Below, piece by piece: positions 7,509 through 63,965 of a DNA stretch of 64,000 nt (position 1 is its first letter; each line of letters begins with the position of its first letter). Origin of the DNA: Zygnema circumcarinatum SAG 698-1b (Eukaryota; Plantae; Zygnematophyceae). The translations under genes were made by a program, and so were the position numbers. The notes under the pieces were generated by a model. The model saw nothing but the letters and a program-made list of their open reading frames with translations, was not told the DNA's origin and searched no databases. Where the stretch lies: contig CM074808.1 of NCBI GenBank assembly GCA_037447605.1, positions 3,038,001-3,102,000 on the forward strand, read 5' to 3'.

Positions 7509-9229
7509 GATGTGAAATCCCCGTGAGACGGTTTGAGTTCAGCCTTCGTTTTCCTCAAGGAAGCCGGTAGTGCCACTCAATGGGCCTGTTCCAGATGCGG
7601 CAAAATTCGTTGAGCGCAAATGATGTATTCCAAATCGAGACAGTCGCGAACTAGCTCGTTATCTCGTCTGCAGAAAGCAACTCGCAAATCAGGTGACTGG
7701 GATCTTACGACGACGCTTGACAGTGTCAAAAGGCAGGGCGAGCCTTCCAGCACTGGAGGGGTTGCCCCTCGACTTTCATCCTGTATTGTTTTCAACTCCT
7801 CCCTGCGTTGGACGCGTGGCAATGCACAGAAGTGCCCCTCCCCGTCATGGCGGCTTGTCTCCATGGCGGCCGCGTGGCCCTGCATGCGCCCAGCGAGGCC
7901 GGCCTCCTCACAAGATTTTTTCTCCGCTAAAAATTTACATTTCTGCAGTCAGCATATTCTCCAGGAGAGGACATCGGCATCAGCGCAGAGCTCAACGCTC
8001 GCAGCCCCCATGGAATCGAGTTCCTGTTCGGCGTCTCCATGGTGTACCCCTCCCTCTGGTTAAAACGAAAGCGCGAAGTGGCAGTGTCGAGGAGGAGCTC
8101 ACGCACCGCTCTACGTCCTCCATGATGTTGTTTGCCGACTTTCAGCATTCCTCTCAATTGGCATCATCCTCATAGTTTTTATTGCTGGAACTAAAATGGG
8201 CAGCGAAAGGAGTTGAACCAACAGACGATGTGATCTGCTCAGCAACGAAACAATGCACACCTAAACAAACACAAGTGAAAGCGTTGGCTCAACTGAAGTC
8301 CACATGTCCTACGATTGCCGATAGAAGTAAGGCGGAAAAGAGAGAGAAGCAAGCGTGCGATGCACTTACAGAGAAATTATAGTGCCCTCCCCTTGCAGCG
8401 GAGAAGTTAGTGACCATGCAAATTTCTTGTGATGTAAATGGAAAAGAGAGGAATCCATTTGCTTCCGAATGATCACTCCTAAGAGCATAGAAATGGGAAA
8501 CTTAAAAAAGGGAATGTTTGGGCAAAGACCATTTCAAAGACCCAATTCCTAGTCTTTAGTCCAAAAAAAAATGTCGGGGCATGGCGAAAAATCCTCGTTC
8601 TGGGAACTGAGGTGTGCTGAAATCATTCCAAGCTTTGGCAGGGTTTTCCCACAATCGCTTCCACGCATTGCTGCAGGCGCAGCTTCAAGCAGAGGTAAGG
8701 ACCAATGTTGGGACTAAAGCGGGGCTTGGGAAGCTGAAAACTTGGGATGTGAAGAAGGATGTGAAGAAGAATGAAAAGGGTCGAAAAATCTAAAACATCG
8801 GCAAAAGTAAACAGATAATCTGCATGCATGCATGCAGAGATCAGTGCACAGCAGTAAAATGGACTAGTTCACACAATGGCCATCGTGGGGATGCAGACGT
8901 TCGATTGGATATGACGAGATTAAAGAGTAATCACGTGGGGTTGTGCTCATAATCGACACCCACCGAGCTCAACAAATCGAAAATCAGAGACCACAAAGCT
9001 AGAAGTCAGAATCAGAAATCACACATCCTTTTAAGCATGCATTCAACAATTAGATGAAAAAACAGACATAAAAACACCACACATAGATTCAGGCATTCAA
9101 CAATCAGATCAGAAGCTAACTCGCACACTCATCCATACATCCAACTCCGACAGCCGTATCGTTTCATTAGTCTCCTAAAAAAAAAAACTATGCAATCCTA
9201 TGTACAAGAGCTTTTTTCTGCGCATCTCG

Positions 9230-11255
9230 TCAAGCGACCTCGTAGAGAAAAGTAACAGGAACCATCTGCGCCTCTCCCCCTCCAGAGTCCACTGCCTTCG
9301 CTTTCAGTTCAATCAAGCTCCGGCCAAAGAACATTGTAACTTCGACGGAGCGATCAAGCCCAAGCCTTGTGTCTGGAATATCTAGGATGAAGTGCCCTTC
9401 ACGCGTCACACCAGGCTCGTCGACGTAACTCGATTCACAAACTGTACTAAAAAGCTCAACTAATGCAGTCGTCTGCTGCTCATACGCAGGGTAGACAACG
9501 TGCCTGACGCTTTTATCTACCTCAATTCTCTCATTCCTTTTCACGAATGACAAGAACACATCATCGCACAGCGAGAAAGATCCACTGTCCAGAACTATCT
9601 TCTTGGAGGCCGGATCTAAAGCTGTGAACGGCCTCACAATAGCGATGCCGTAGGTCTTTCGGGAAATTCGGGATGTCACTTGGTATTCAGGCTCAGTCAC
9701 CAAGGAAAGTCCTCCTAAGCAAACCGCACTCCCTGGATTCTTCGGGAAAATGATTCTCTCGTCTTTAAACTTTGACTTGATTCGATGTTGGAGATATGGC
9801 GACTCAGAAAATCCTCCTACCACAAAGATGACTTTACATGCAGGTAGTTGGTGCAGCTGTGCCTCGATCAGGTCGAGGATTTCATCTACGACCGGATCAA
9901 ACAGGCCCTTCACGTCGTCTGAGGAGAGAAGCAGCTCATCATAACTTCCTGTGTCAATGCCGTTCATTTTGTCGTGGTCCTCCCATGCACGTGCCAAAGT
10001 AGCATTCACTTCCAATATGTGATCCTGAAGATTGTCAATACTGCAAGAAAAGAAATGGAAAAATGGCTCGAGGATCAGAAAATTGATACCCCCACTTTCC
10101 CTGCAAGCATCTGCCTGGAAACCCATACTAGACAACCTTTTCCAATAATATCCAGTAGAGCTCTGCAAGTTCTGCAAGCATTCACTGGTGCAAGTGGTCG
10201 GCTAAAAAAAAATACCTGAAAATGAACTTTGCCTTTTGAAACTCCTTTAAGATGTTTTGTGCAACCCACGGGTGGCGCTTCCTTAACTCGCGAAAGCATC
10301 CAATCCTATTCTCCAAAAGTCCCATGAAGTTCTTGTCGACCGCGCCTCCTCCACAATAACCTCCTGAACTCCTCAAAACCTCTTCTACTCTTCCCGTCCT
10401 ATTCGTCTGAACCACAATATCAACCGTCCCCCCTCCCGCATCAACGACCATGAAGGGGTCGCCATCTTTCAACTCGAGGGACTCGCCATTCTTTTGGCAG
10501 TAGACAGAGGCTGCCTCTGGTTCCAGAAGTATGTGAAAGGGATGCGGGCTTCCAGCACTGTCCGGTTGTCCTGGAATTCGTACAAGGCCTGCATTCTGAG
10601 CGATGGACCTCATCTCTTGCTTTGTACGATCATTCCAAATAATTGGCACAGTTATTGCCCATTCAATGTCCTCGATGCCGATGTGAATCCCAAACCGGAC
10701 TTTAAGCACGTCCAATATGAAACCTTTTAACTGCGCCAAGTAGTCAGTGGTGGCTTTCTGAGGAGAAATACCAGCCGGGAGACGCTGACGCCACTCTTCA
10801 ATCATTTCAGAAGTGTCTTGACTTTCAAGAGGCAGCTTGAACATCTCGATCAGGCGACCTGCAGCTGCCGTCTGCAAAGGCTCATCACTGCCTGTAGCAT
10901 TTGGGTCACAGAAGGGACGGCCCCTGTTGCCTAAACTTTGAATGCCTTTAACTGCCGAACGTTCTGCATTTGGAACTGACCTATCGACAGCTTCAAAATA
11001 CCGTTTGACTGCCGGCCAACCCCAATCCTCCAGCTTTAGCTGCCCATCTGCGGTATGGGAATACCACAGACTGGTGCTGGTCTTCCAGTACGTTTTCCCG
11101 TTTACTGCCACCTCGTCTGGCCATCCCGAGTACATCAACTTCTCACCAGGATTTTCCTTGTGGACATATGCGAACCCTGAATACGTCGTCCCGAAATCAA
11201 TACTCACGATTATTCTCGGCTCAAGAAGAGAGGGCTGCCGTTGCCCGTCCGCCAT
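9230..11255 (-). CDS. Hsp70-like protein, HSPA12-type (non-canonical Hsp70 family), ~616 aa, 2 exons
   Basis: Exons 11255-10216 and 10040-9230 with a 175-nt GT-AG intron give 1851 nt in frame. Motifs: IDFGTTYSG, TVPIIW, LEPEAA, VVDAGGGTVD, CGGGAVD, VGGFSESPYL, AVCLGG. It does not resemble canonical DnaK/HSC70 at the C-terminus. Confidence 0.88.
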
Positions 11256-14080: not shown

Positions 14081-24380
<10,300 letters not shown>

Positions 24381-37522: not shown

Positions 37523-39842
37523 CTACTTGACCAGCACGCCGCGCTGCCTCGCCCTCCTCTTCTCCTCCACCGCCGTGAACTCCAACACCATCTCCACCAG
37601 CATCTCCTGCATCACCATCGCCTCCAGCTCGAACACCACCTCCGCCCTCTCCTCCCCAATCTCCACCCACTTCTCCAACCCTCGCGTCATGTCCCTCCTC
37701 GCTGCATCATCCAAAATGTCGTAAACTTCATCTGAAGTCGGAACTGGCCAGTCGTGAACCTCCAACCAGACCTCCTGCAGGAGGTCCTTTCCGGTAGGCC
37801 GCGGCCTTATTGTGGGCTTCTCCCTTTTCACCCATGGAGGCGGCGTCACAAAGGGAGCGAGCCTCCTTCCCAACGCTTCATTGACAGCATCAAAGAGAAG
37901 CATGCGCTGCCTGCGCTCCTCACTCCTCCTCGCAGCATCCAAAGAGGGCCTCCCCGAGCTGCCCACCGCGTTCGAAGCACCCAAAGCTATCCCTAATTCG
38001 AGCTGCTCGAACACGGCGGGGTTCATTGGAAGCTGCGCGGAATGCCAGGGTGGGAGCGTCTCTGCACTGAACCCTGAAACCACGAGGATTTGGCGCACGT
38101 ACTCCAAGTCCTGCTCCATGCCCTCCACCTCTCCGATGAAGTCAAGAGAGGCAAACTCGAGCGAGTCTGCCGTGTCGCAGGAGCTCGCCTTCGACTGCGA
38201 CATTGTGAGACGTTCCACCACGTCTCCAAGGTGCCGCTGGAAATCGAGCATGCATGCTTCCCCGTTGCTCCTTCCCTCAATGTTGAGGCCACTCAAAGAC
38301 ATGCTTCCTGCAGAGAGCAAACATTTCCACAGTTTAGAGCCTACTTCGCATTTATCGATACAGCAACCACCATGTTGAGAAATTGAGTATATCAACTCAT
38401 GCCGCGAGGAAGTAATCAGCAATCGGACATCATTCATCTGGTGGAATCAGACTTTCTCGAAGCCTCACCTCCGCCAGTACTGTGTCTCAGCCCATCTTCA
38501 CTGTCGACAGGAGAGACCGACTCGTCTGGCAGAACAAGGTCCAAAGTGGAGACAGGGCTGTACTCTCCTTCGTTCCACCTCCCTCCCTCCTTCCCTCCCA
38601 CCATGTTCCACATCTTCGCTCCGCTGTGGCGAGGTGTGCCGATCATCACATTGCTGTCCCTCTCATCACGCTGCATGTCGTGCAAACACACACATTCTCA
38701 GAAAAATAGTTGGAAAAAGCTGCATTCACAATGGTAAAACGTGGGCACCATGAAACACAGCAACAGAGTACATTCTCGCAAAAAGAGGCACACTCTTCCT
38801 GCCCGAAATCACATCTGCTTTACATAATCTGAAGCGACTTCTGTTATCACAGGTCTCCCAACCCCACCCTGTTGTCAGGAAACAGTACCTGCACTGCCTT
38901 TCCGTGCTCCCCTGATGCATGTCCTCCAGCATCTCTAGCTTTCCCGCTCGGGGGAGATGCAAACTGCCGCCCATTGTCGCTTGAAGAAGTGTTTGAATTT
39001 CCTGCGTTTGTCCTCCTTGCAGAATCATCACTGTGAAGCTTTGATTCCCTTTTGGAACCATCCTGACCCGATCTGCTCTTGGATGCTGCCGAGGACCTCT
39101 CTGAAGGTTTCAACTCCGCAGAACTGACCGCCTCCTGTCCTTTAGGGTTCAAATTCTTTGAAAATTTCACCGGAAAAAGCCGTTCCCTGGCTGTTCCCTT
39201 CACTTCTGAACCAAAAATGTTACCCTTTCCGTCCAAATCTGCCACTTTTTCGTTCCTGCTCGATCCCAGAGAATGACGCCGGACATTCACAGAGGAAGAG
39301 ACCGCCCTGACCTCCTTCTGCTCCACTCTTTTCTCTGAAACTGCAGTAACTTTTTTCGCCGGAGATACCCTCACTGAAGATTCAGGCTCCGCCCAGACCT
39401 TCCCTGAAGTTCTAGCATGTTCCGCTTCCCCTGCAGGCGAGCCTCCCAGACTGCGCCTCCTTCCATCAAAGTCCAGCCTACCACTCCTGCCGTGGCCTCC
39501 TACCTCTCCTCCACTCTCTCCATTTCTCCCTCTCTCTCCACTACCTTCAGTGGCCGGCCTCAGCCTGCCACCTGGAAGGTACTTGGAGGGAGGGGGAGAG
39601 GGAGTGCGCGGAGAAAGAGACCGAGGAGAGGAGTGGCTACCATGGTTGCCGGAAGCTTCCAAGGAAGCGTCCTGCGCGGCGACATGGCCCGAAGGCACAG
39701 CGCTGCCAGCCCGCGACTTGGCGAGCGAGGCCTGCGTTGGAGCCAACAGCCTACTGTTCAGCCCTAAGCGTGCCACGAGTCCCATTCCCCGCCTTCCACT
39801 CCCTGCATCTGCTTGATTCGCATTCTCCCCGTCCCCCTCCAT
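37523..39842 (-). CDS. TRM/LONGIFOLIA-like protein (TON1-recruiting motif, DUF4378 C-terminus)
   Basis: N-terminal LVARLGLNS (VARLMGL-like), basic Ser-rich middle, YSPVSTLD (SPVSVL-like), and C-terminal YVRQILVVSGF...WHS...PMNPAVFEQLE...LLFDAVNEAL...LEAMVMQEMLVEMV. Internal exon boundaries are not fully resolved. Confidence 0.75.
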
Positions 39843-47033: not shown

Positions 47034-50000
47034 CTAGGCTGTTATAAACTGCTTCAGCGAATCCTCCGCTGCAACGTCCCGACAGGGCTGCGAAAATCAG
47101 CAACAATAGACGTGTCAGAACAAGGCAAATGAGTCCACATTCCCTGCAAAAAAGCACCAAAATTTTGTAATTTTTTGCGTCGGCATGCGTCCCCTGACCT
47201 TCAGCTTTTGGAAAGCTTCTCGAAGAGCCTCCTGCCGAACCTTTCGTTCCGGTGCCTCTACCACCATCTCCCACACCCGCCCAGTTTTGTAACCACTCTG
47301 AAAGAGCTGTAGGGACCTTAAGGGCCCTCCTCCTTCCTCCCGAGGAACGAGCTCAAGGGCATTATCTGCTCGGGTATTAAGAGACGCCAAGTCCTTCATG
47401 TCCGAATACGACTCGCGGTCCACGAGCAGCTTGCTGCGACCCTCCTTGAAGGCGATTAGCTGCAAAGGGATTCAAAAGGTGCCGTTAACGGTCAGTCCCA
47501 CAACCATTCCAGAGCGCGCTCACTGAACAGAGGCAATTCCCCCCAAACTGCAAGGATACAGTATGTAGAGTGTACAGTTTCAGTGTCCCATGTTCTACAT
47601 TCTTAAAAGCTATCTTTTCTTTAAGGGGTTTAGGGCCTTTATCTCAAGGGTGGTTGCAAGGGGTGTGAAGACTCAGACCTTGGGAGGTCGTCCCATGGCA
47701 TCAGTGTTGTAGATGGACGCTTTGTCCACCAGCTCGGAGTAACGTTCCAACGACTGAGCAAACAGCCGATGGGACCGCAGTTGACCCCCGACCGGAACCC
47801 CTCTTTTGGTCAAAATTGCTCGCCTTCATTGCCAAAAGTCAACAACAAAAAGGTAAAATCAGTTAAACAGTCAGTCATCTTTCAAGTTTTTGACTTCATG
47901 AACACCTATCTCTTCGCACATTTAGACTTTGACGAGATCAAAAAGGCTTTTTAAGCTCTTCAGGAGAAAAGAAACCCCCACATACCTCATCGCCCGCATG
48001 ACGGCCAAGTGCGCATCACACACCACTCCCACCATCTCAATCCTGTACGGAAGCCTCCCCTCCTTCCCGCCCACTATGTGGCCATTCCCGGAAGTTTCCG
48101 CAGTCTCCTCCTCTCCCTCCCCTACCTGCTCCCAGTACTGTTCCTGCACGGTGCCATCTGGCAGCTTCCGATAGCCCGGTCCCAACCGGTATCGGACTTT
48201 GTGCACGTTGCGGGCCATGGCGATGGTTTGGGCGACGAAGGGTTCCCATGACATAGTTCCGTCGAAGATGACATCGCGGCCCTCGTTCAAGGCTGTGACT
48301 AACATAGAAGATGCAGCAGCCGTGGATTCGTCATGCACCTAAACAAGGGGTTGAAGATTTCAGTCCGCAAAGATCAAGTGTTGTATTATTGCCTTGCAGG
48401 ATTTCTTGGGTGTTTTGCAATTGATTGATGGTATCTAAGTCAGCAGGAAGAGGATGAGAACGCAAGGGTAACAATCCTTGTAAGCACCTTAAGAAAAACC
48501 GTAGGGCAACATCCGAAGGACCACAAACATAGCCCAAAACTTGAAAGGAAATCAGTACAAACGCAAGAACGCCTTAAGTTTGCTAATCTGAAAAGGGTAC
48601 AAGCCATACATACCATCTGTGCGACACTCGCAACATCACCGGCGCTTTGTTCCAAAAGTGCCTTGTAGACCACATCTTTCTCCTTAAAAGCGTCCGCTTC
48701 AACAATAACCGCAGTCTGTGCAATCTTCGACCAGAATGGCCTGCCAAAAAAAACGGGGAGGGAAAGCAAGCGAGAAGGAGAGAGAGAGAGAGAGAATGAA
48801 GAGACGAAAAAGATGAGGAAGGAGAAAAATCTCCAATTACGTACTCTTACATTCACGCCTGCTTCTCATCCAGCATCATTCCATTCACCATCATTCAGGT
48901 GACCGTGGAAAAAAGCACCCCATGAACGACTGCTTTTCTCTCACGTCTTCATGACCTCCCCGGCGACGGTCGACTTTCCGGCGCCCATCCCCCCTCCCAG
49001 CATGAGCAGGACGGGGCATCTGACAGAGTCGTCCGCGGGCACCATCACTTCGCCTTCCGTCGGAATGCCGGAGCCCCCTTTGTTGTTTTGGTGGAGCATT
49101 TTCATTTCCTCCAAGAGCACGGAAAGCTTCCTCTGAGGGCCCAAGTGGTCCAGCACCTTCTTGAAACGCTGCGCGCTGCACACACATTCAGCCCGCCCTG
49201 CATTGATATCACGTTTGATAAAGCAAATTTTACAATCGAGGATGTGTTAAACCCAGTGTAGAATGTTCGATGCGCAAAAGCGGTATCCTCGATAACTTTG
49301 GCATACCCTTACTATTCATTTACCGCTTTAGATACTTAAGGGCCTGACAATATTGAAAACCAAAGAAATAACGCACCGTGTTGCTATGAGCACGGCGTCT
49401 TTGAATGAGTATTTCCTTTTTGGTCCTTTGATGATCTGCAAGCCTCCTCAGCCAAAATGTCATGCTCCCAAAACAAAACCTTCACCCTCACGATCTCCGT
49501 CCCTCCTCCGCATTCCAACCCACCAAATACCTCTCACAAGTCCTCGTTTCCATAGCTTCCGACCCTTCCCACTGATCCCCATAGCATTCCCGAGCCCTTC
49601 CCCATTGCTGATTGTATGAACCTCATTTCCAACAAACCCTAGCAGCTACCTGCTCCACCATGATCCCTGCATGTTTCCAATGGAACGCGAAGTAAGTGAG
49701 CATGCACGCGTCGAGCTCCTCCACAAAGTCCCGCACGAGGCGGGCGCTCTCCTCCTGCGAAACTTCCGCGCAGGCGCTGGCCGCGAGCAGCAGGACCTGC
49801 TCCCGGCTCTTGTCCGCCGCCGTCTTGTCGCCCCGCACGTAGTCGTCCGCCGCCTGCGCCACCGCCGCCGCGACGCTCCCCCCGCCGGCGAGCCCGAGCT
49901 GCCGCACTGCGCGCCATGCACCGCCATGCAAGCCGGCGGTTAGGGTTGGGTTTTCCGGCTGGAACCGGGAACTGCCGCCACATGACATGGAACTGCGGCC

Positions 50001-51018
50001 CGTTCGACGGTTCCCGTGGCCAATAACGGGACTGAGCGGGCGAGCGCAGAGCAGGACCGTGAAAAAAGGAAGTGATGAGAAACACGGGTCTGGACAAAAT
50101 CTCTGATCCGTACATTGTCGGCAGCCAATCAGAGAACGAGAAAAGTCCTACAAATAAATCGACCGGCTGACTAACGTCCAATCAAACGGCTTCGGAAGTA
50201 CGAGGATCTCCTGTCCGTACGTGGTCCCCAACCCTCACATCTAGCCGTACGCGTCCGTACAATCTTTCCGACTCGAGGACACCGGTCCAGAAACAGCAAC
50301 AAGACAATGAAAAACGACAAACTAAAGTGACGGTGGGTTTCCAGTTTTGCCCTCCCTCGCTCCCACAAGTTGGAGCACCAACTTAAGAAGATGGTCGCAA
50401 GCATGAAACCATCGATACGGAATTTGTTCAACAAACGGAACTCGTCTAGCGCTCATACGGTTCCACAATTGAGGGTCGAAAAATTTGAAGATTAAGCCCA
50501 TGTTGGAACGCCCTGATGGCAATTCGCGATGTTGGTTTTCAGACTTTCCTGGTTGAGCATGGACAGGGAAGTCTGAGCCTGCTGAGATTGAAGATTTTAC
50601 TGTACTCATTTTCCCTATTTTGAAACCCATCGAACGGCAGACGGTGGAGCATGTCGCACCCTCCAGAACTTCTACTTTCTCCTTTTTCACGCTATCATCA
50701 TCAGCAGATCAAACACAAGAGCATGCGAGAGGGGACTGCAGTGGGCAAAACATAAGAGGAAACTCGACAGATAAGGGAGAGGTAAGGGAACGCTGACGTC
50801 AGCCCTAACCAGAGGCCGAAGCACCCACCGACATATTCACCGAACTTCTCGATGCTCTTCACTTCGCCTCCGCCGCCGCCATCGGCCTTGGGAGATAGCC
50901 TCTGCCTGCTCGCTCGCCACGTGGTCAGCAGCCACCTCCGCGTGAGCTCTACTGCCAGCGCGACACCTGTCAGCCCGAGCAGCAGGGGGCCCCGCCCAGA
51001 CTTGGATCGACCCGCCAT
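47034..51018 (-). CDS. Calmodulin/Ca2+-dependent NAD kinase-like protein (P-loop, zeta-toxin-like domain), multi-exon
   Basis: Exon 1 (51018-50829) gives a TM-like anchor and EKFGEYV, spliced to VRQLGL...ELDACMLTYFAFHW. Then PVLLMLGGGMGAGKST, VIVEADAFKE, GRDVIFDGTMSWEPFV, YRIEMVGVVCD, QLRSHRLFA. The start could be 51051 or 51141; the end could be 47115 if the last intron is not spliced. Confidence 0.85.
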
Positions 51019-51691
51019 GGCCTCAAGCACGTGGAACCCGGATCGGCTCATGCATGCAGGCACGAAGTCGAGCTCCGCCGCCCCCTGGCCATGGCTGCCC
51101 CCCTCTCCCTTGCCCTCCTCCCTTCTCGCCCTCCCCTCCACGCGGGGGGGTTGTACGGTATCGGATCGCCCCTCCGTCAGAGTCCCCGCAGAAAACGGAA
51201 GCTTCGTTTGTACGGGTGTCCGTACCGCCTTGTTATTCCGTTAGGGCCGTAGCGTATCGTATCTTATTGCAAGGCTTTGTCGAAGACGATATGGCGATAT
51301 ATTGGCTTGCGATTTCTCGATGTTTGAGTATGCTCGATGCGATATATTTCGAATATCGATCTCTACCCGGGCCCATCGCATCATGAACCGTCGACAGATG
51401 TCACGTTCACATAGAACTTAACGCTGTTCCGTTTCCGACCCGATTTCCAAATTCCGTGCATGTAGCTGCTGCGTTCAACTGCCGCCCCGGCGCCCGCCGG
51501 TACGGTGACGTCCCCTCCCGCCGGTGCGAGAGATTCGCTCGTGCGAGTCGGACGCCTTTCCCTCACCAGCGCTAGGGATGGATGTTAGCAAAAATTTTTA
51601 GAAGGCAAGCCGTTTTATAAAACACTTTTAGAATGTTCGTACATTCATACGGTCGTGCGATCGTACGGCAGCCTCTTTGACGGGCCAGCTC

Positions 51692-53516: not shown

Positions 53517-56500
53517 TTATTAAAACGTTCTAATAGGGGGTGTCAGACTTAAAAAATTTCAGTACGCGTGTTCGTAAGTTTGACATCAGAACGAGTACTC
53601 CAGCATAATCGCGATCCTTCTGCGGCGGAGTACTTTCGTAACCTTTTTTTTCGTAACGCTTTTCGTAAGATTTTGTTAAGTCTGACACCCCCTAATAGTG
53701 AAATCTAAACTCTAAAAAGTCACTTGTACGGACTTCCGTCCATCCCTAATCGCCTAATCGGCCTCTCGCCCGCCCGCCCGCCCGCCCATCGTACGGCACA
53801 GATCTCTCGCCAGATAAAGTCCACCCACCGACTGACGTCATCCCTTGTCCGGTCAGCAACCTCGGGCACCAAAAGACGTCACTAGCACGTGTGTGGTAAT
53901 GAGATCCGCTCCGTCTTTGTCTGAACGTTTGTCCTCTCCACCCACTCCCTCTCCTCCCCCCTCTCTCCCCCTCTCTCTCTCTGTCTCCCGCCCTTCCTCT
54001 CCCCTTTCTCCTCGGCCTCGGGGCAAACAGAGAGGCGTTTGACAAGAGATTAGGGTTAGGGACGCAGCTCCGGTGATGCCTGGGAGGCGGAATGCTGAAT
54101 AGGTCGCAGAAATCGAAAGATTTTATTCGCAAGGTGTACGTTTCTACATACAAAGATCGCTGGTGGCAGAGTTAGGGCGCGCTTCATAATTGAACCCTGA
54201 GCTCTAGGCGTTGTAGGGCTTGAATAACGGTAAGAACGAGGTTTTTTGGAAAAAATTGTAATGTTTTGACATCAGGAACGCGTTTAGGGTTTTGAGCGAG
54301 CAAGGCGATTGATATATATACTTACCTCCCTCAGTCGTTTCCTAAACAAGTGGATGTTCTGAAGCCATTTTTTCTCAGTCGATCCATTCTTAGCAGATAT
54401 TATTTTTATATCGTTTCTCCTGCAATCGAACGCCCTGTGTGCGCTTGTTGAAAGCTATTGACACGGATACATTTACAATTGTTCCGGGATGCAGGAACAA
54501 TGTTTTCGAGGAGCATGCTAGTCAAACCTCGAGAATCCCAGTGCAGGTATTCAGGTTCATACCATAAAGCTTGAACATTTCTGGCTACAAAGGGTCCCTC
54601 CCTCCCTCCCTCCTGTTCTCGATATAGTATATTGAATTGATACTTCTTCACGTAAAAAGAAGAAGTTTTGCAGCTGTAGCTATCATCCGGATGTTTATGC
54701 GAAACTCGTAATGAATCAAAGTTTCCAATCTGTTTCAATGTCTGACAGCTATAGCTGCTTTCGNNNNNNNNNNTAACACGTGGCAAATTTTGATTGGCTG
54801 GGAGCTGACAATAGAACAAGATCTCGGGCCGAGGTACGCGCGCACTCGCAAGTGCGATCCGGCTTTGACGGGACTCGTGGGCGCTTTCCATTCGCTGAGA
54901 TCAAGGCCGGCTGCAGATCGAACGGTGATCTGCAGTGGTGCGATCTGCGAGGGAATCGACAGCTGCGATTGACACACACGTGTGAAAGACGGACACCCGC
55001 GAACGATCTCGTGGCGAACGGATCTTCCGCTCCGAGCGGATTCGGGCAGGCAGATATTTCTTTCCCTCAAAAAAAAAATTCAGGTAGGCGGGATACAGTA
55101 TTCAAAATGCGGTGACGGGGTATCATTTTCCTTGGTTAGCAAAAATAAAATCAGCCGACGGAAGAAGGTGGGTATCGATTCCAAAAAGGTGTGAAAAAAG
55201 CATTTTCCGTTTTTAATCCCTTTTGAAATCTGCCCGGCCGGGAAGGGGTGTTTGGGATCCAAAAAAGGGGTGGAAATATCACTACCCTTATTAAAACGTT
55301 CTAATAGGGGGTGTCAGACTTAAAAAATTTCAGTACGCGTGTTCGTAAGTTTGACATCAGAACGAGTACTCCAGCATAATCGCGATCCTTCTGCGGCGGA
55401 GTACTTTCGTAACCTTTTTTTTCGTAACGCTTTTCGTAAGATTTTGTTAAGTCTGACACCCCCTAATAGTGAAATCTAAACTCTAAAAAGTCACTTGTAC
55501 GGACTTCCGTCCATCCCTAATCGCCTAATCGGCCTCTCGCCCGCCCGCCCGCCCGCCCATCGTACGGCACAGATCTCTCGCCAGATAAAGTCCACCCACC
55601 GACTGACGTCATCCCTTGTCCGGTCAGCAACCTCGGGCACCAAAAGACGTCACTAGCACGTGTGTGGTAATGAGATCCGCTCCGTCTTTGTCTGAACGTT
55701 TGTCCTCTCCACCCACTCCCTCTCCTCCCCCCTCTCTCCCCCTCTCTCTCTCTGTCTCCCGCCCTTCCTCTCCCCTTTCTCCTCGGCCTCGGGGCAAACA
55801 GAGAGGCGTTTGACAAGAGATTAGGGTTAGGGACGCAGCTCCGGTGATGCCTGGGAGGCGGAATGCTGAATAGGTCGCAGAAATCGAAAGATTTTATTCG
55901 CAAGGTGTACGTTTCTACATACAAAGATCGCTGGTGGCAGAGTTAGGGCGCGCTTCATAATTGAACCCTGAGCTCTAGGCGTTGTAGGGCTTGAATAACG
56001 GTAAGAACGAGGTTTTTTGGAAAAAATTGTAATGTTTTGACATCAGGAACGCGTTTAGGGTTTTGAGCGAGCAAGGCGATTGATATATATACTTACCTCC
56101 CTCAGTCGTTTCCTAAACAAGTGGATGTTCTGAAGCCATTTTTTCTCAGTCGATCCATTCTTAGCAGATATTATTTTTATATCGTTTCTCCTGCAATCGA
56201 ACGCCCTGTGTGCGCTTGTTGAAAGCTATTGACACGGATACATTTACAATTGTTCCGGGATGCAGGAACAATGTTTTCGAGGAGCATGCTAGTCAAACCT
56301 CGAGAATCCCAGTGCAGGTATTCAGGTTCATACCATAAAGCTTGAACATTTCTGGCTACAAAGGGTCCCTCCCTCCCTCCCTCCTGTTCTCGATATAGTA
56401 TATTGAATTGATACTTCTTCACGTAAAAAGAAGAAGTTTTGCAGCTGTAGCTATCATCCGGATGTTTATGCGAAACTCGTAATGAATCAAAGTTTCCAAT

Positions 56501-56534
56501 CTGTTTCAATGTCTGACAGCTATAGCTGCTTTCG
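53005..56534. repeat. 1.76 kb direct duplication (53005-54763 and 54774-56534) across a 10-N gap
   Basis: The two units differ at only a few bases by eye. The N run is at 54764-54773. The ORF track shows identical duplicated peptides. Confidence 0.95.
53536..53692. mobile_element. 157-bp MITE with TIR GGGGGTGTCAGACTTAA, TSD TA (extends to TAATA)
   Basis: Perfect 17-bp TIRs read directly. A second copy at 55307-55463 lies within the duplicated block. Confidence 0.85.
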
Positions 56535-56626
56535 TTTGATCTGGGGGTGCCAGATCGTACAAAACAGCAACTTATTGACCTTGAGCCGACAGCACCTTCC
56601 CTACCGTGGTTGAAAGGCTTAGAAAT

Positions 56627-59446
56627 ATGGAGAAGAAGGCGAAAGGGTCGAAAATTCAGCTTCAGGGATGGCACATTGTGGCATGTTATGCCCTATGCAT
56701 TCTTCTTCACGCTGTTGCAGTTATGGGCGATATCACAACCTTTGGAGTGCTTCTTCTCACTGCGTCCGGAGTTGCAGCATCTCCTAACGCGATGCCGGTT
56801 TTTGGTGGAGGCACAAATATTCGACTGGACGGGAGAGCAGCCGCGACATTCATGCAGCATGGACTCAACAAGAAGGGACTGAACTTCGGTCGGACGTGCA
56901 GTAACTGTGTCCTTTATGAGGGCTGGCGTATGTCTAGGGGTTTGGTTTCATGGCAAGTCATTACAGATTTCATTATTGGAGTGGCATACATCTCCGTTCC
57001 GATACAGCTGTATTTCTTTCTGAAGAAGGTCAAGGTGCGGCCAGGAACTCGTTGTTGGCCCTTTCCTCTTCTGAGAAATAAAACTGCTATGAACTTTCCC
57101 TTATCGCATGAGGAGATTCGGAGAATTCTCGACTCGCGACTTGATCAATTGGAATGAATTTCTGGACTTTCGAAAGCATGATGAATAAATTAGGACTGTT
57201 TCATACAAAAAACATGTTGTCGGTTGTCGAGCTTGCATTTTATTTCTCGTCTGGCAGCTCCTTTTGTGAGCTTTGCTTAAGCGGGTGGGCTTAAGTGGTG
57301 CTATAGTGGGGCTGGGAGGTGCAGTCTGTACCATATGCTCCCATTCTTCTACAGTTCGGTGCCTTTATCACCATGTCTGGGTGAGTTCTCCACTCTCCTT
57401 TCTCTTTCTAGATGTTCAGTCTGTGCGTGAACAGTCCCCTGCTAATGGAGGATGGTGTTACAGGAGTGGGCAACCTGTTTTTAGAGCAGGAGTTGAATTC
57501 AGTAGCAAGGGCAGTTCCAGTGGGGTTAGGTCCGAACAGTTTGGTCACAGAACTGTTACTCTTTTTTGCAGAACCTAGTATGGAGGCTAGGGTGAAGATT
57601 TCGCAGTTCTTCACATTAGCTTTTCAGCTATCTGAGCCTTATCATGGTGGCTTATTTTTTATATCGACATTGTACGTGCATAGTCGAAGCTGAGAAAGGT
57701 CTGTTGCCAATAGATGGCGAGAGAGTGTGTCAGACTTTGTCGTGTTTTATGGGTTCGGGAACGGTCCTGACAGCAGTAGAGCTCATATTCTTCCAGACTT
57801 ATCTAGAACCTTTCAGGTTACAATTTACTTGATAGATATGGTTTGTCCGTGTCACAATATTGCAAATTGATTTTTCAAGAAACAGCTGAACGTTTTGAGA
57901 CTTGTCAGACACTAATGCAAGGGCTCTGCAGCCTCGAAATGGAAGGATAAACCATATCCGAATAAGTTTGAGTTAGCCGATGGAAAGGACATCAATGAAA
58001 CATTGCGCATCTGCCTGTGTCTGAGCACTCATTATATGTATAGGTCTCGCCCATCCTTGACCTCTAAACCGGAAACAACAAGGTATATGAATCTCACGGA
58101 ATCTATTATATCACGCTCTCTTTCGTTGGCCTGTTCTGTATGTACCAGCTCTGTTGTCACCAACTCCTTGAATCCTGCTGTTATCATTTTGCAGAATCTC
58201 TCACTTCCTCAACCTGTGGACCTATGGCGGCCTGCCACGTGTCCTCATGCTAGTCATGACGGGCCTGAAGCTCCTCTCAGCGTTCGTCTCCTGCACTGCG
58301 GCCATCACTCTCGTGGGCCTCATCCCTGACCTCCTCGGAGTACACCAGCGAGAAGTGTTCCTGCAAGAGAAGGTGCCTGTCATCCCTCCACCTCCTCCTC
58401 CTCCTCCTTCTCCTCCTCCTCCTCCTCCTCCTCCTCCTCCTCCTCCTCCTCCTCCTCCTCCTCCTCCTCCTCCTCACATCGTTCAAAACCTCAACCTAGA
58501 CATAGCCTCCAATGCCGGAAGCAGAACATAATTCCTTCTTAATGAGGGGGGAAACGAGTCTGCTTCAGGTAGATGCCCTGGACGAGGAGGTTCTGAGCGT
58601 TCTTGGGCTCGAAGACACGGCTGCAAAAGTGCGAACAATCACAGCCGCCATCCGCAGCACTTTGGACCGCGATGTGATCGGCTCTACCGCCTGTACGGAA
58701 CTGAGGGAGCTTCTGAAGCTGGAGAATGTGGCCCTATGGCTTCCCACCCGGCAGGGGACTGCCTTGGAGTTGGTCTATGAGAGCGAACGGCGGCAGACGC
58801 CGGCACTGGCACAGATTCCCGTCACAGACCCCACTGTTCAGGAGGTGAGAGACACTCATCGCTCTCTGGGAAAGAGAAGATGATGTGCTTCTGTTGTACC
58901 CAGCGCATCACGTTTCTTTCGAAACGTTCCAATAAATACCCAAAAAAAGTAGTCCAATACCTACTTTTGGCTTTTTTTTTTAACATTTCAATCCTGCTGC
59001 AATAACGGCCGGCAGGGTGGAGAAGAGTCTGCTGTTGTTGTTGTTGCGATAAGTTTCATCTTCCCGGGTCCAAAATTTACCGCGTTCGATTAGCGTCCTC
59101 TTCTTCTGAGCCCCCTTCTCCCCTTGTCCCCTCTCTCCCCTCTCTCCCCTCTCTCCCCTTCAGGTAGTCGCGAGCGGCCATGCTTTGGTGATATCGGAGG
59201 CGAGTCAGATTGCTCTTACCAGCTCTCTGTTCGCTGCGGCGGAGGCAGAGTGCGTGGCGGCTGTGGCCGTACCGCTGCTGAGCGGAGTGGAGGTGGCGAG
59301 CAACCCAATGGCCAACCTCGCACACTCGCAGAGCATCTCCTTTGCGCTCATGCTGCTCGTTCTGCCGCCCAAGGGGGGCCGCCATTGGCACCCTGATGTC
59401 CTGGAGGTCGCGGAAATACTAGCGGATCAGGTGACAACAGGACATA

Positions 59447-59530
<84 letters not shown>

Positions 59531-62500
59531 CTGCTCTCACTCTCCCTCTCTCCATCGCTCCAGGCAAGGGGAGTGTGAAGTAGTGGATTGGGATAATAGA
59601 TTAGCCGAATGCCAAGTATAGTGGAGGTTCTACGGTCGAAAGGCTTGATGGGTGGGGCATGAGTTGTTCCAACTTCATCTCTTCTGCACACTGAAGGGAG
59701 AACTGGGATCTGGCAATCTTGTGGAACATTTGCAAGCAAATTTATTTAACAGTGACTACTTCCCAGGTTGCAGTCTACTCTGCCTCCTCACTAGAACTGG
59801 CAGTGGTGCATCGCATGAAAGCCCTCTCACTCTCGACCCCAAATCAAAACCAAACTGCAGTTCTACATTCCCCCATAGCCCTTACCCGCAGCCCCTCGCT
59901 TGCAGGTAGCGATGGCCCTCTCCCACGCAGCCGTTCTGGAAGAGTCACAGCGCATTCGTGAGCAGCTCGCCGAGCAGGGGAAGAGTCTCCGCCTCGCGGA
60001 GTTTGAGGGCAAGTCGGCAGTTCGTGCTCGCGACAATTTTCTCACGGTACAGGCTGCAGTTGCCCTCTCCTCTTTCCTCCTCTTTTTGTATCTCCTTCTC
60101 CCCCTTTCCTCCCCTACCTCCCCTTTCTCCCTTTCCCCCTGCAAACACAAAAAAAATGTAGGTCCTTTGTTTATTCATTTCTTTCTCCGCAACCTGTCCA
60201 TAGCCCATTCGTTGAAGTGGCAAGGGAGCTCCGGTTTTCTGCAGGTGATGAAACACGAGATGCGGACTCCCATGCATTCTATTACAGCTCTTTCGTCCCT
60301 TTTGGCTGAAGCCGATCTGGAGGAAGAGCAGCACTCCATGGTGGAAACCATGGCGAGAAGCTCCGCCCTCCTCTCCACTCTCGTCTCCGACATTTTGGAT
60401 TTTTGGCGGCTCGAGGACGACAGTGTGAGCCTGAAGGTGGAAGCATTTGAGCTCACGCTTGTGGTGAAGGAGGCTGAGACTCTAGTGGCTCCCATTGCAA
60501 AGGATAAGGGTTTGACTCTCACCTTCAAGTCGGAGACGAACCTCCCTTCGAAGGTCACCGGTGACAGCAATCGACTCCTGCAAGTGTTGCTCAATGTGGT
60601 ACGTCAGTCCTCGTTCCCTCTCCCTCTCCCCTCCCTCTCTACCCCCCTTCGCTCTCCCCCCCTTTTCCCCCTCCCCCTCCCTTTCTCCTCTCCCTCACTC
60701 CTCTCCCTCTCTCTTCATGTCATGAAGCCGCACAAGAGAAGAAAAACTCCTCCAAAGGTCCACCGCTTTCCGTCACCCTACACACCACACTAAATCACTA
60801 GAACCCAGAAGAGCTAATGAATCCACTCTCATGCCCCTTCCACCTTTGTGCGTTCACCTCCATTTTTTCCAGATCGGCAATGCTATCAAATGCACTGCCA
60901 GCGGGGGCTCGGTGACGGTGTCAGCCTCTCTGGAGAAGATGGAGAGTGCCCGCGACGGGTTTGTTCTGAAGGCGGAGGCAGGACACGTGTTTGTGCGCTT
61001 TGAGGTGAAGGACACGGGAGTGGACCTGCTGGAGAAGGACATTCCTCGCCTCTTCGAGAAGTTTCAGGACGATGATGGCACGGTTTCGAGGACGGGTTTA
61101 GGTCTTGCGCTCTCTCGGAAGTTTGTGCAGGTGGGCTGCCCTCACTTTCTCTTTGGAAGTCATGGAGGGGTCGTGAAGGGCCTCAGTAATGGATGAACTT
61201 TTTCTTGAAGGAAGTGAAGATGGCATTGACTTTAAATTCATCCGAGGTGGTCAGTTTCTTTGTGGATGGGAAATTGTGGCTGCATTCTATATCTAATGAT
61301 GCTCAGGCCCGAAGGAAGGAGGTTTTGCATTCAGCGTAGGTTTACTCGGCATGGTAAGACCTGAATAACAGTCCCAGAGGTTTATGCGCTTACGGGACAG
61401 AAAGAGAGCGGACGATGCCATCCCCATAAAAATGTGCAACAGTTTAATGTGAGAGAACTAAAGTTCTGAACAGTCTTCTGTTGGCGGTGCAGCTGAGCGA
61501 AGGACACATGTGGATCGAAAGTGGAGGGCCGGGAGGAGGGGCAGCATGTAAATTCATTGTGCGGCTGAAGCTGGAGGAGGATGATGGGAAGGAGGAGGAG
61601 AAGGAGGACGAGTGGGACGTGCCAGACGTCAACTTTTATGCCTTGAGGGTGTGTTTTTCTTTTTTGTGAATTTCGGCTCTGTTGTTAGGTTTCTTGAGGT
61701 GTTTTAGCTCTTTCTTTTCGTTTTCTCTTTCTTTTTCTTCTTTTTCTTTTTCATTTCTGTTTTTCTGTGCGAGTTTAAGTAGTGGGCCTTGTCGACAGAT
61801 TCTTCCAGTGGTCCAATCCTCTCATGCTCCTCACTCTTCCGTTCGTTCTGCCTCCCGCTCCCTCCTTCTGTCCTTCTCATTCTCCATTCTCAGTGCACTT
61901 CTAATGCAAGGAGCGCTTGCAAGGAAAATGGGCAAGTGGCGAGTAGTCATTCTGCTGCACTGTCTGATTCATGTCCATAATTCATGTACCGCTTTGCTTA
62001 TCTGCAGATCATGGTGGTGGACGATAACATGATCAACCGGCTGGTGACAAAACGCCTCTTGGAGAGCATAGGCAGCAGCACAAAGGTGGTGGACTCTGGG
62101 AAGGAGTGTCTGCGGCTGCTGAAGGAGCGGTCAGATGAGGAGGACCCATATGATGTCCTCCTCCTTGACCTCATGATGCCGGAGGTTGACTTTTTTCCTT
62201 TCCCACTTGCTGTTGCCTCGTTAGTCTCTTACATTGATGTGATGAAGATTCTGCTTGTGATCGATAACCGAAGATTTTGTTAATGAACGCAGAAGTATGA
62301 TACCGTGTGTCGGTGTCCTGTTGTGGGCTAAGCAGAGTTGGGTTGTACATGGTGCTGCAGATGGATGGATACACTACGGCGAAGAAAATTCTGGAGGAAG
62401 TTCCCGAAAAGAACCGGCCTGTCATAGTTGCCCTTACTGCAAATGCAGACGAAACCACGAAGGAACGATGTTTAGAGCACGGAATGGTGGGAATGATCAC

Positions 62501-62570
62501 GAAGCCCATCTCTCTCAACCCTCTTCGTGACATTCTCGGGAAGATGTTGGACAGCAATGCAAGGAAGTGA
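56627..62570 (+). CDS. ETR: Ethylene receptor-like hybrid histidine kinase (N-terminal extension, 3 TM, GAF, HK, receiver), multi-exon
   Basis: QVITDFIIGVAYISVPIQLYFF, QFGAFITMSGISHFLNLWT, VSCTAAITL, IRSTLDR, VAMALSHAAVLEES, KHEMRTPMHSI, GDSNRLLQVLLNVVGNAIK, KDTG, LFEKF, TGLGLALS, MVVDDN, LLDLMMPEMDGY, IVALTAN, ITKP. Confidence 0.92.
58389..58475. repeat. (CCT)n microsatellite in an ETR intron
   Basis: Direct reading. It lies just after the GAGAAG|GTGCCT donor. Confidence 0.9.
59447..59552. repeat. (CT)n microsatellite in an ETR intron
   Basis: Direct reading. Confidence 0.9.
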
Positions 62571-63452
62571 GGAGCCAAACCCGGAAAAGCACGGGGAAAA
62601 CAAAATTAAATAAATGTGACTTGTTGTTCTGCTAGAATAGGACTTGTTTAGGAACTTAAATCAGCTAAAACAAATATGGTTCTCGCCACGTAGCCGTGGA
62701 GGGGGGGCTCCGGCAGAGTAGGTATTGGCTCTGGGGAATTGGAGAACAAAATGCAGAAAGAGGCAACTTGGTAGGTATGCAGGTGGAAGAGGGTTCGCTA
62801 GGGTTACTGGTGTATGTTAGGACCAAAGGCATGAAAGGACGGGCGATTTGTGGTCTCTCCCTCTCCCTCTCCCTCTCGCTCCACCCCCATCGCTCCCCTT
62901 CTCCTCCCCACCCCCCACCACCCCCACCCCTACCCTCGCCCAGCCCCTACCCTCGCTCCTCTCCACTCCTTCCCCTCGTTTCAAAATTTTGAATTTTGAA
63001 AGCCTTCAAAAAAACTCGAAAACAGACAAGGTCTTTCATGGACTTCGTGTCGGCATCACCAGTTAAGCAGCTGGAGCATCCGAGTCTGCTGAAGCATGGC
63101 ACGAATTATAATGGACGCTTAATCAGATGGAAGTGTCAACGGTCACATGTATGTACACGCGCCAAGAAAGTGAAGCGCTTGTCACTACAACTCACAAAGC
63201 GACTCCTTCCCCACATCAAATAACGAGACCATTAACGCGCCTATTCCTTCCACAGAACTGGACAGCAGCAGTACTTCCCCGCCCCTTTTTCTACTTCACA
63301 TCCTATCCCTCTTTCTGCGTCACCTCTCCAAACCAACCCTCAGCCACGCCTATCAACACTTCAACTGTACAATGCAACCGACCAGCCTCAAACCCTGATC
63401 TGAAATCCTAATCCCAGACCCTCAGTCTGAACCCTAACAGCCCTGCCTGAGT

Positions 63453-63728
63453 CTATGGCTCCCCCCCCCTCCCCTCCTGCCCTTGCACCCCGTACCGCCT
63501 CCGCAGCGTGCGGTACTTGTGGAGCCGTGCGAGCGCCTGGAGCTCCCTCACCACGTGCTCGCCCCGCTGCAGGGCGGCGACACGTGGCGCCTCCCCGTCC
63601 TCCAGCGGCCGCCGGAAGGCCTCCTTGGCCCGCCGCCGGACCTCCGCCAGGCCGCCCGCCCCGGGGTACTGCCGCCCGGCCAGGAGCAGCCGCTTGTACA
63701 GCTGGCGGGCCGCGGGGCTCAGCGCCAT
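63453..63728 (-). CDS. LYRM5: LYR-motif protein, LYRM5/ETFRF1-like (electron transfer flavoprotein regulatory factor), 91 aa, intronless
   Basis: MALSPAARQLYKRLLLAGRQYP...RRRAKEAF...RGEHVVRELQALARLHKYRTLRRRY matches the LYRM5 pattern LYKxLLxxGRxYP...GEFVxKELEALxxLRKYRAMKxRY. Confidence 0.85.
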   Translation of the reverse strand: MALSPAARQLYKRLLLAGRQYPGAGGLAEVRRRAKEAFRRPLEDGEAPRVAALQRGEHVVRELQALARLHKYRTLRRRYGVQGQEGRGGEP

Positions 63729-63965
63729 GGCCGGGGTGCGCGACACGTGGCGTTCAGCGTGGACGAGGAAGGAGAGGGCGCTTGGGAAGCCGACACGTGG
63801 CGGTCGGTGGCGGAACGTCGGGGGGAAACCCGGAAAAGGCTTTCCATGAGGTCTCTCAGGCGACAAAATCAGTTCGCCGTTTTACGGAGCGGGAACGAAG
63901 CAGATTCCAGAGGAGGGACCCGATTTGCTTTTTTTCCTCTTTGAAGGATTTTGATCTTTAAAATT

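Follow-up and report, generated by a model that had tools for sequence, protein, structure and literature searches.

An expressed ethylene receptor homologue without Cys65 in Zygnema circumcarinatum points to a conserved Ser/Thr65 branch of the receptor family

Ethylene receptors bind copper through Cys65, their textbook ligand for this metal. Here we report that a 64,000-nucleotide (nt) stretch of the genome of the zygnematophyte alga Zygnema circumcarinatum SAG 698-1b (GCA_037447605.1, contig CM074808.1, forward-strand positions 3,038,001 to 3,102,000; hereafter the window) contains an 11-exon ETR1-type gene (56627-62570, + strand) that encodes serine at this position. The gene has an open frame of 826 amino acids, is represented by spliced transcripts, and has homologues with threonine at the same position on a metagenome contig and in Closterium sp. 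Naga37s-1. Comparison of the three sequences indicates that the Ser/Thr65 change marks a conserved branch of the receptor family and not a one-off mutation. The window probably contains a genuine, transcribed representative of an old paralogous receptor branch in zygnematophyte-type algae. We favour, with some confidence, a reading in which its product is a conserved paralogue that would bind neither Cu(I) nor ethylene and would signal hormone-free via its receiver domain.

In canonical receptors, Cys65 and His69 coordinate Cu(I), and the C65Y substitution loses copper and ethylene and confers dominant insensitivity (PMC10266040). Homologues have been surveyed in plants, algae, fungi, amoebae and diatoms, with emphasis on the retention of the essential residues (PMC6324907, PMC5285503, PMC10266040), and Cys65 shows high conservation in a set of 1,221 sequences (PMC10266040). 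In the literature searched, we found no earlier report of a natural receptor lineage lacking Cys65.

Serine at the Cys65 position in genome and transcripts

Position 65 is encoded by exon 2 (57325-57380, + strand), which is 56 nt long, specifies SVPYAPILLQFGAFITMS plus two bases of the Gly66 codon, and forms the first half of helix II of the ethylene-binding domain (EBD). The exon is flanked by AG at 57323-57324 and GT at 57381-57382, and is followed by an 814-nt GT..AG intron (intron 2, 57381-58194, + strand) and by exon 3, which starts at 58195. The joined exons read ...SVPYAPILLQFGAFITMSGISHFLNLWTYGG...; the junction of exon 2 with 58195 is also given as ...PYAPILLQFGAFITMSGISHFLNLWT..., with TCT as codon 57376-57378 (+ strand). 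As the numbered reference we used P0015, an ETR1 orthologue from Erythranthe that carries ETR1 numbering. A gapless EBD alignment to P0015 places the serine (residue 154 of the model) at position 65, and D25, Y32, I62 and H69 are retained as D114, Y121, I151 and H158. An initial annotation of this DNA had proposed the exon join, the serine in a gapless alignment to ETR1, the retention of these four residues, and hence a natural Cys65-less receptor with an intact reading frame. The join is borne out by the splice sites and by transcript joints in four runs, the serine by the alignment to P0015, the retained residues by the 826-residue model, and the intact receptor by the 11-exon structure together with its spliced transcripts.

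Eight transcript runs were found, five of which contain the gene stretch, and their word share of 0.40-0.56 fits exon-only coverage. Four runs from two studies were aligned to positions 56600-62580. The joints of exon 2 with its neighbours (57034 to 57325 and 57380 to 58195), for which the initial annotation had suggested a check by cDNA, are exact in transcript contigs of all four runs. Eight of the ten modelled introns appear as joints in the transcript contigs; the joints of introns 3 and 5, where repeats were skipped, are unlisted, and consecutive positions of the contig from run X1 cover introns 3, 4 and 5. This run yielded a single 3059-nt contig that spans the whole mRNA. In the X1 contig, exons 1 and 4 are separated by 234 positions, which correspond to exons 2 and 3 (56 + 178 nt) and thus leave no room for an extra exon between them. 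Across 6 kb, the sole letter difference between the genome and the transcript contigs is at 61254; no letter differs at 57376-57378, and serine is therefore read in the RNA as well, where the annotation had allowed for TGT in the reads. It had also allowed for another exon supplying CGxxH: besides the X1 contig, a six-frame scan of the whole window revealed no CGxxH in an EBD-like context, no second copy of exon 2 and no second copy of the gene.

Intron 2 is partly retained in low-depth contigs, which keep parts of it (57617-58043, + strand), and cryptic GT donors after 58037 (run X3) and 58043 (run X5) are joined to the acceptor at 58195. These isoforms are probably unproductive. We also considered minor isoforms as a source of the missing cysteine and rejected them, given their low depth and the immediate stop (GGG TGA) on read-through from exon 2 into intron 2.

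Gene structure and domain architecture

The gene model was obtained by reading the sequence and with a local script, and all ten of its introns have GT..AG borders. Exons 1 to 6 lie at 56627-57034, 57325-57380, 58195-58372, 58569-58844, 59164-59430 and 59906-60046, and exons 7 to 11 at 60245-60598, 60873-61130, 61493-61648, 62008-62184 and 62361-62570 (stop included), all on the + strand. The joined 826-residue model was used for local translation, blast, alignment and the tree.

Exon 1, which is covered by transcripts, encodes the start codon, an N-terminal hydrophobic segment (residues 12 to 50), a lumenal stretch that is conserved in the clade and has RTCSNC at its end, and helix I of the EBD, which contains D114 (D25), Y121 (Y32), P125 (P36) and Q127, the last replacing E38. 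Exon 3 supplies the rest of helix II (ISH, in which H158 corresponds to H69), helix III, and His205, which stands at the position of Lys116. Downstream of the membrane domain, exons 4 and 5 (58569-59430) encode the GAF domain, identified by Pfam and covered by transcripts. Exons 6 and 7 (59906-60598), also transcribed, encode a coiled linker and the HisKA domain (E 5e-13), whose H-box, KHEMRTPMH, includes the phospho-acceptor histidine. The HATPase_c domain (E 7e-10) is encoded by exons 8 and 9 (60873-61648), likewise present in transcripts; its N box is present and its G2 box reads TGLGL, but its G1 box is degenerate (DTGVD versus DxGxG). Exons 10 and 11 (62008-62570) encode the receiver domain (Pfam Response_reg), in which the DD, D, T and K residues are all kept.

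Scanned exon by exon, the Pfam family ETR1_N matches exon 1 over profile positions 2-30 (E 2.6e-5) and exon 3 over positions 52-95 (E 1e-5). These single-exon scores, 24.8 and 26.2 bits, are just below the curated cut-off of 27, and exon 2 fills the gap in the profile. The GAF, HisKA, HATPase_c and receiver modules stand in ETR order, as judged by per-exon Pfam matches and full-length blastp, and local blastp aligns the model with P0015 at 42% identity over 745 columns. Together, the ETR1_N E-values and the identity to P0015 indicate homology far beyond chance. A PDB search with exon 3 and an Rfam scan of the window gave no match.

The 5′ leader contains an upstream open frame of 43 codons (56482-56613, + strand) just ahead of the main start at 56627; the X1 transcript contig reaches 197 nt upstream of 56600 and would cover this frame if colinear with the genome. 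The introns are rich in simple repeats, including a long (CCT)n run in intron 3 (58379-58483) and a (CT)n run in intron 5 (59437-59559), with similar CT-rich tracts in introns 6 and 7 and in the 3′ flank (62860-62990).

Comparison with canonical receptors

Exon 4, used as a query against 1.84 billion representative proteins, returned 75 proteins, 20 of which include the membrane domain. Cys65 is present in 19 of these 20. The exception, P0057 (Craigia yunnanensis, 467 residues), is an angiosperm ETR1-like protein with an otherwise canonical membrane domain and tryptophan at position 65 (FIILWGATH); it may represent a natural insensitive allele, a pseudogene or a fragmentary annotation. The closest representative protein is only 58% identical to exon 4, and the full-length protein of the window gene itself thus appears to be absent from the representatives.

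The membrane domain of the window protein aligns without gaps to the 20 receptors and keeps D25, Y32, P36, F58, F61, I62, G66 and H69. Over the EBD and the linker into the GAF domain, however, it departs from the other sequences at 14 of the 46 columns that are at least 90% conserved among them (S24T, A29G, F33I, I35V, E38Q, Y41F, W53P, L64M, C65S, T68S, T101A, K116H, A126V and E141D). The altered residues include Glu38, Trp53, Leu64, Thr101 and Lys116, which hardly vary among canonical receptors; Glu38 is invariant in 20 of the 20 canonical sequences. The initial annotation, although correct about the serine, therefore understated the case, as it missed these further EBD changes, the degenerate G1 box and the syntenic Ser/Thr65 clade described below.

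The window protein has the same domain order as ETR1 and orthologues such as P0015, that is, a three-helix membrane domain, GAF, HisKA with its histidine, HATPase_c, and a receiver with its aspartate, and it shares with ETR1 an N-terminal cysteine pair (CSNC in the window protein). It differs from ETR1 in Ser65, Gln38, His116 and the G1 sequence DTGVD instead of DxGxG, and in an N-terminal extension of about 90 residues that includes the hydrophobic segment. An extra N-terminal hydrophobic segment and a tendency to degenerate kinase motifs are also features of subfamily II receptors (ETR2, ERS2 and EIN4 type). However, subfamily II receptors keep Cys65 and bind ethylene, and those in our sample (P0019, P0051, P0056 and P0074) group with the canonical receptors.

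Canonical receptors with Cys65 occur in the same algal class, in Mesotaenium endlicherianum (ME000022S03647), Spirogloea muscicola (SM000176S03138) and Closterium sp. NIES-53 (partial), and they have Glu38 as well as Cys65. The EBDs of these zygnematophyte receptors are 54-57% identical to the sampled angiosperm ETR1, but only 32-39% identical to the EBDs of the Cys65-less clade. The position altered in the window gene is the one changed in etr1-1 (C65Y) and in the ETR1 C65S mutant, the latter bearing the same residue as the window gene. Whereas these mutants are induced single changes in a canonical receptor, the change described here is natural, takes the form of serine or threonine in three genomes, and is accompanied by further pocket changes and a different selection pattern.

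A syntenic clade with serine or threonine at position 65

The five best exon 4 matches are partial gene predictions from algal DNA, with 47-58% identity. One comes from a 24.8-kb metagenome contig (L003) that contains a complete homologue, and another from a 1-Mb contig of Closterium sp. Naga37s-1 (L004), on which a receptor fragment is annotated as 'unnamed protein product'. We determined the structures of both genes by tblastn and splice-site reading. A 56-nt exon 2 occurs at the equivalent place in all three genes. In L003 it encodes KLAYPHVMLLFVAFALLTG, followed across the junction by LSH, with threonine at position 65 (ACC), and in L004 it encodes KFPYHLLILQFGAFVTTTG, followed by LTH, again with threonine (ACG). 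The codon series TGY (Cys) to TCT (Ser) to ACN (Thr) is compatible with an ordered change. The three genes also have in common Gln38 (PxQLY), His116, D25, H69 and a lumenal extension that ends in SRxCxNC, is conserved over about 40 residues across the clade, and has no domain family match in a Pfam scan. By contrast with these shared residues, Y32, I62 and W74 vary within the clade.

A maximum-likelihood tree of 18 sequences, covering the EBD and the start of the GAF domain, comprised the three genes and 15 canonical receptors (angiosperm ETR1-type, gymnosperm ETR2-type, lycophyte, liverwort and zygnematophyte). In this unrooted tree the three genes form a group with 100/99 support, and the window gene falls in neither subfamily I nor subfamily II, apart from all 15 canonical sequences.

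Furthermore, the genomic neighbourhood is conserved. The upstream neighbour of the window gene (47215-51542, - strand) is a homologue of a gene with an AAA_33/Zeta_toxin domain (tblastx, 50-76% identity over many exons), and the Closterium homologue is likewise preceded by a matching AAA_33/Zeta_toxin gene (L004 588-6866, from the annotation) in the same orientation. This common neighbour identifies the window and L004 receptor genes as positional orthologues. The canonical receptor gene of Closterium NIES-53 also has an intron within the Gly66 codon, one base away from that of the clade, consistent with the clade having arisen from a duplicated canonical algal receptor.

On the Closterium contig, segments at 8975-9483 and 10283-10742 contain the 5′ part of exon 3 three times at 160-bp spacing and part of exon 4 twice, and another sequence from a Closterium assembly (L005) has many partial exon copies throughout. 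These tandem duplications may be real or may be assembly artefacts. Two metagenome scans, one with exon 4 alone and one with the clade alignment, gave no matches, nor did a word search with the open frame of exon 1. Elsewhere in the window, open frames encode a DUF4378 protein (37523-38437, - strand, E 1e-32), a chromodomain-bearing product that is probably part of a retroelement (23175-24380, - strand), and a small LYR-family (Complex1_LYR) protein whose frame follows the receptor gene closely on its downstream side (63453-63866, - strand).

Constraint pattern and kinase state

Within the Cys65-less clade, identity is 39-49% in the EBD, 46-66% at the start of the GAF domain and 74% in the receiver (window versus L003). 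The corresponding values for canonical receptors, from alga to angiosperm, are 51-64%, 48-71% and 27-45%. As far as these identities indicate, constraint in the clade is inverted, with a loosened membrane domain and a tightened output domain. Such a pattern speaks against a dead gene, and for a membrane domain that has been freed from holding copper and ethylene.

In the L003 homologue, alanine replaces the phospho-acceptor histidine (NAKMRTP, 9402-9440), and the G1 box reads STGVD; G1 is thus degenerate in both members with known kinase domains. The alanine at the histidine position and the lack of DxGxG indicate that the clade as a whole has not conserved autokinase activity.

Proposed function and alternative explanations

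Substitution of Cys65 by serine disrupts ethylene binding by ETR1, as cited in a preprint (bioRxiv 10.1101/2025.10.20.683334). Since the copper cofactor depends on the Cys65 thiolate, binding of both Cu(I) and ethylene has most likely been lost in the window protein. In the branch to which it belongs, Cys65 has been replaced by a hydroxyl residue (serine in the window gene, threonine in L003 and L004), Asp25 and His69 have been kept, and the lumenal extension has been gained. Without ligand binding, the receptor would stay in the ligand-free, signalling-competent state at any ethylene level. The conservation pattern suggests that its output would pass through the conserved receiver and contacts with partner proteins and not through a histidine autokinase. 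Its activity would be set by the amount of protein or by another input, and not by the hormone. It might act alone or in mixed complexes with canonical Cys65 receptors. It could thereby place a floor on the repression of the ethylene response, or it could have an ethylene-independent job such as the activation of Raf-like kinases in osmotic stress, similar to moss ETR kinases, which act upstream of the Raf-like kinase ARK in abscisic acid (ABA) and osmotic-stress signalling independently of ethylene (bioRxiv 10.64898/2026.05.21.726866).

Several observations weigh against this reading. All three members retain Asp25 and His69, and this may mean that the site is still used, perhaps to bind a metal. 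Beside Ser65 the window protein has methionine, a residue that can ligate Cu(I), although it is not conserved in the clade. Position 65 is visible at three loci only, and the L004 copy ends after the start of exon 5 within the 21 kb examined, amid local tandem duplications, and may be decaying or misassembled. The Cys65 receptors known from the algal class come from Mesotaenium, Spirogloea and Closterium NIES-53, and not from the window genome. In addition, the tree, being unrooted, accommodates both an ancient sister group and a fast-evolving offshoot.

The strongest alternative, which we hold to be possible but considerably less likely, is that the membrane domain has been re-purposed. In this case, the Ser/Thr65 clade would be neofunctionalised, sensing another metal or small molecule at a site formed by Asp25, His69 and the hydroxyl residue, or taking its input from the lumenal extension, and passing the cue on through the receiver; or the protein would act mainly as a Ca2+-permeable channel that does not depend on ethylene. 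D25, H69 and a hydroxyl at position 65 are present in every member of the clade, together with the conserved extension of about 40 residues, and the tight constraint on the receiver implies that a regulated output is still needed. The channel variant draws on a preprint in which ETR1 and a Klebsormidium receptor were studied and in which C65S keeps the basal Ca2+ current and loses its enhancement by ethylene (bioRxiv 10.1101/2025.10.20.683334), and it extends to the clade by analogy with these other receptors. However, the low EBD identity within the clade (39-49%) and the variable Y32, I62 and W74 look like relaxed constraint and not like a tuned pocket, and the extension matches no Pfam domain family.

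It is improbable that ethylene binding has been retained, perhaps at lower affinity, through a copper site in which either His69, Asp25 and Met153 (position 64) or a partner subunit would hold Cu(I). The methionine directly precedes Ser65 in the window protein, and ligation of Cu(I) by Met thioethers is known from other proteins; receptors also form dimers and higher-order complexes, and two N-terminal cysteines are present (CSNC). Nevertheless, Cys65Ser is reported to disrupt ethylene binding by ETR1, and Glu38, invariant in the canonical sequences, is lost as well. As a substitute copper ligand for the whole clade, Met64 was rejected, because this residue is leucine in L003 and threonine in L004.

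A decaying gene or an artefact, whether through recent pseudogenization, an error in assembly or sequencing, or polymorphism between strains, would account for the many changed near-invariant EBD residues and the truncated appearance of the Closterium homologue, but it is largely refuted, and very improbable, given that all eleven exons are intact and bounded by canonical splice sites, that correctly spliced transcripts from two studies carry the letters of the genome, that the receiver is 74% identical to that of a distant homologue, and that the synteny and the common 56-nt exon point to old, maintained orthologues.

Implications

A Ser/Thr65 branch that is expressed, syntenic and conserved would be a natural counterpart of the classic dominant-insensitive mutants. 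The role of the receiver in land-plant receptors is still debated, and the combination of a loose membrane domain and a tight receiver points to the receiver as the functional output. If the clade is indeed neofunctionalised, it would reveal an ethylene-independent ancestral function, such as osmotic-stress signalling to Raf-like kinases or Ca2+ entry. Collectively, the branch offers a handle on receptor roles beyond ethylene sensing and on how early streptophytes may have tuned their sensitivity to ethylene.

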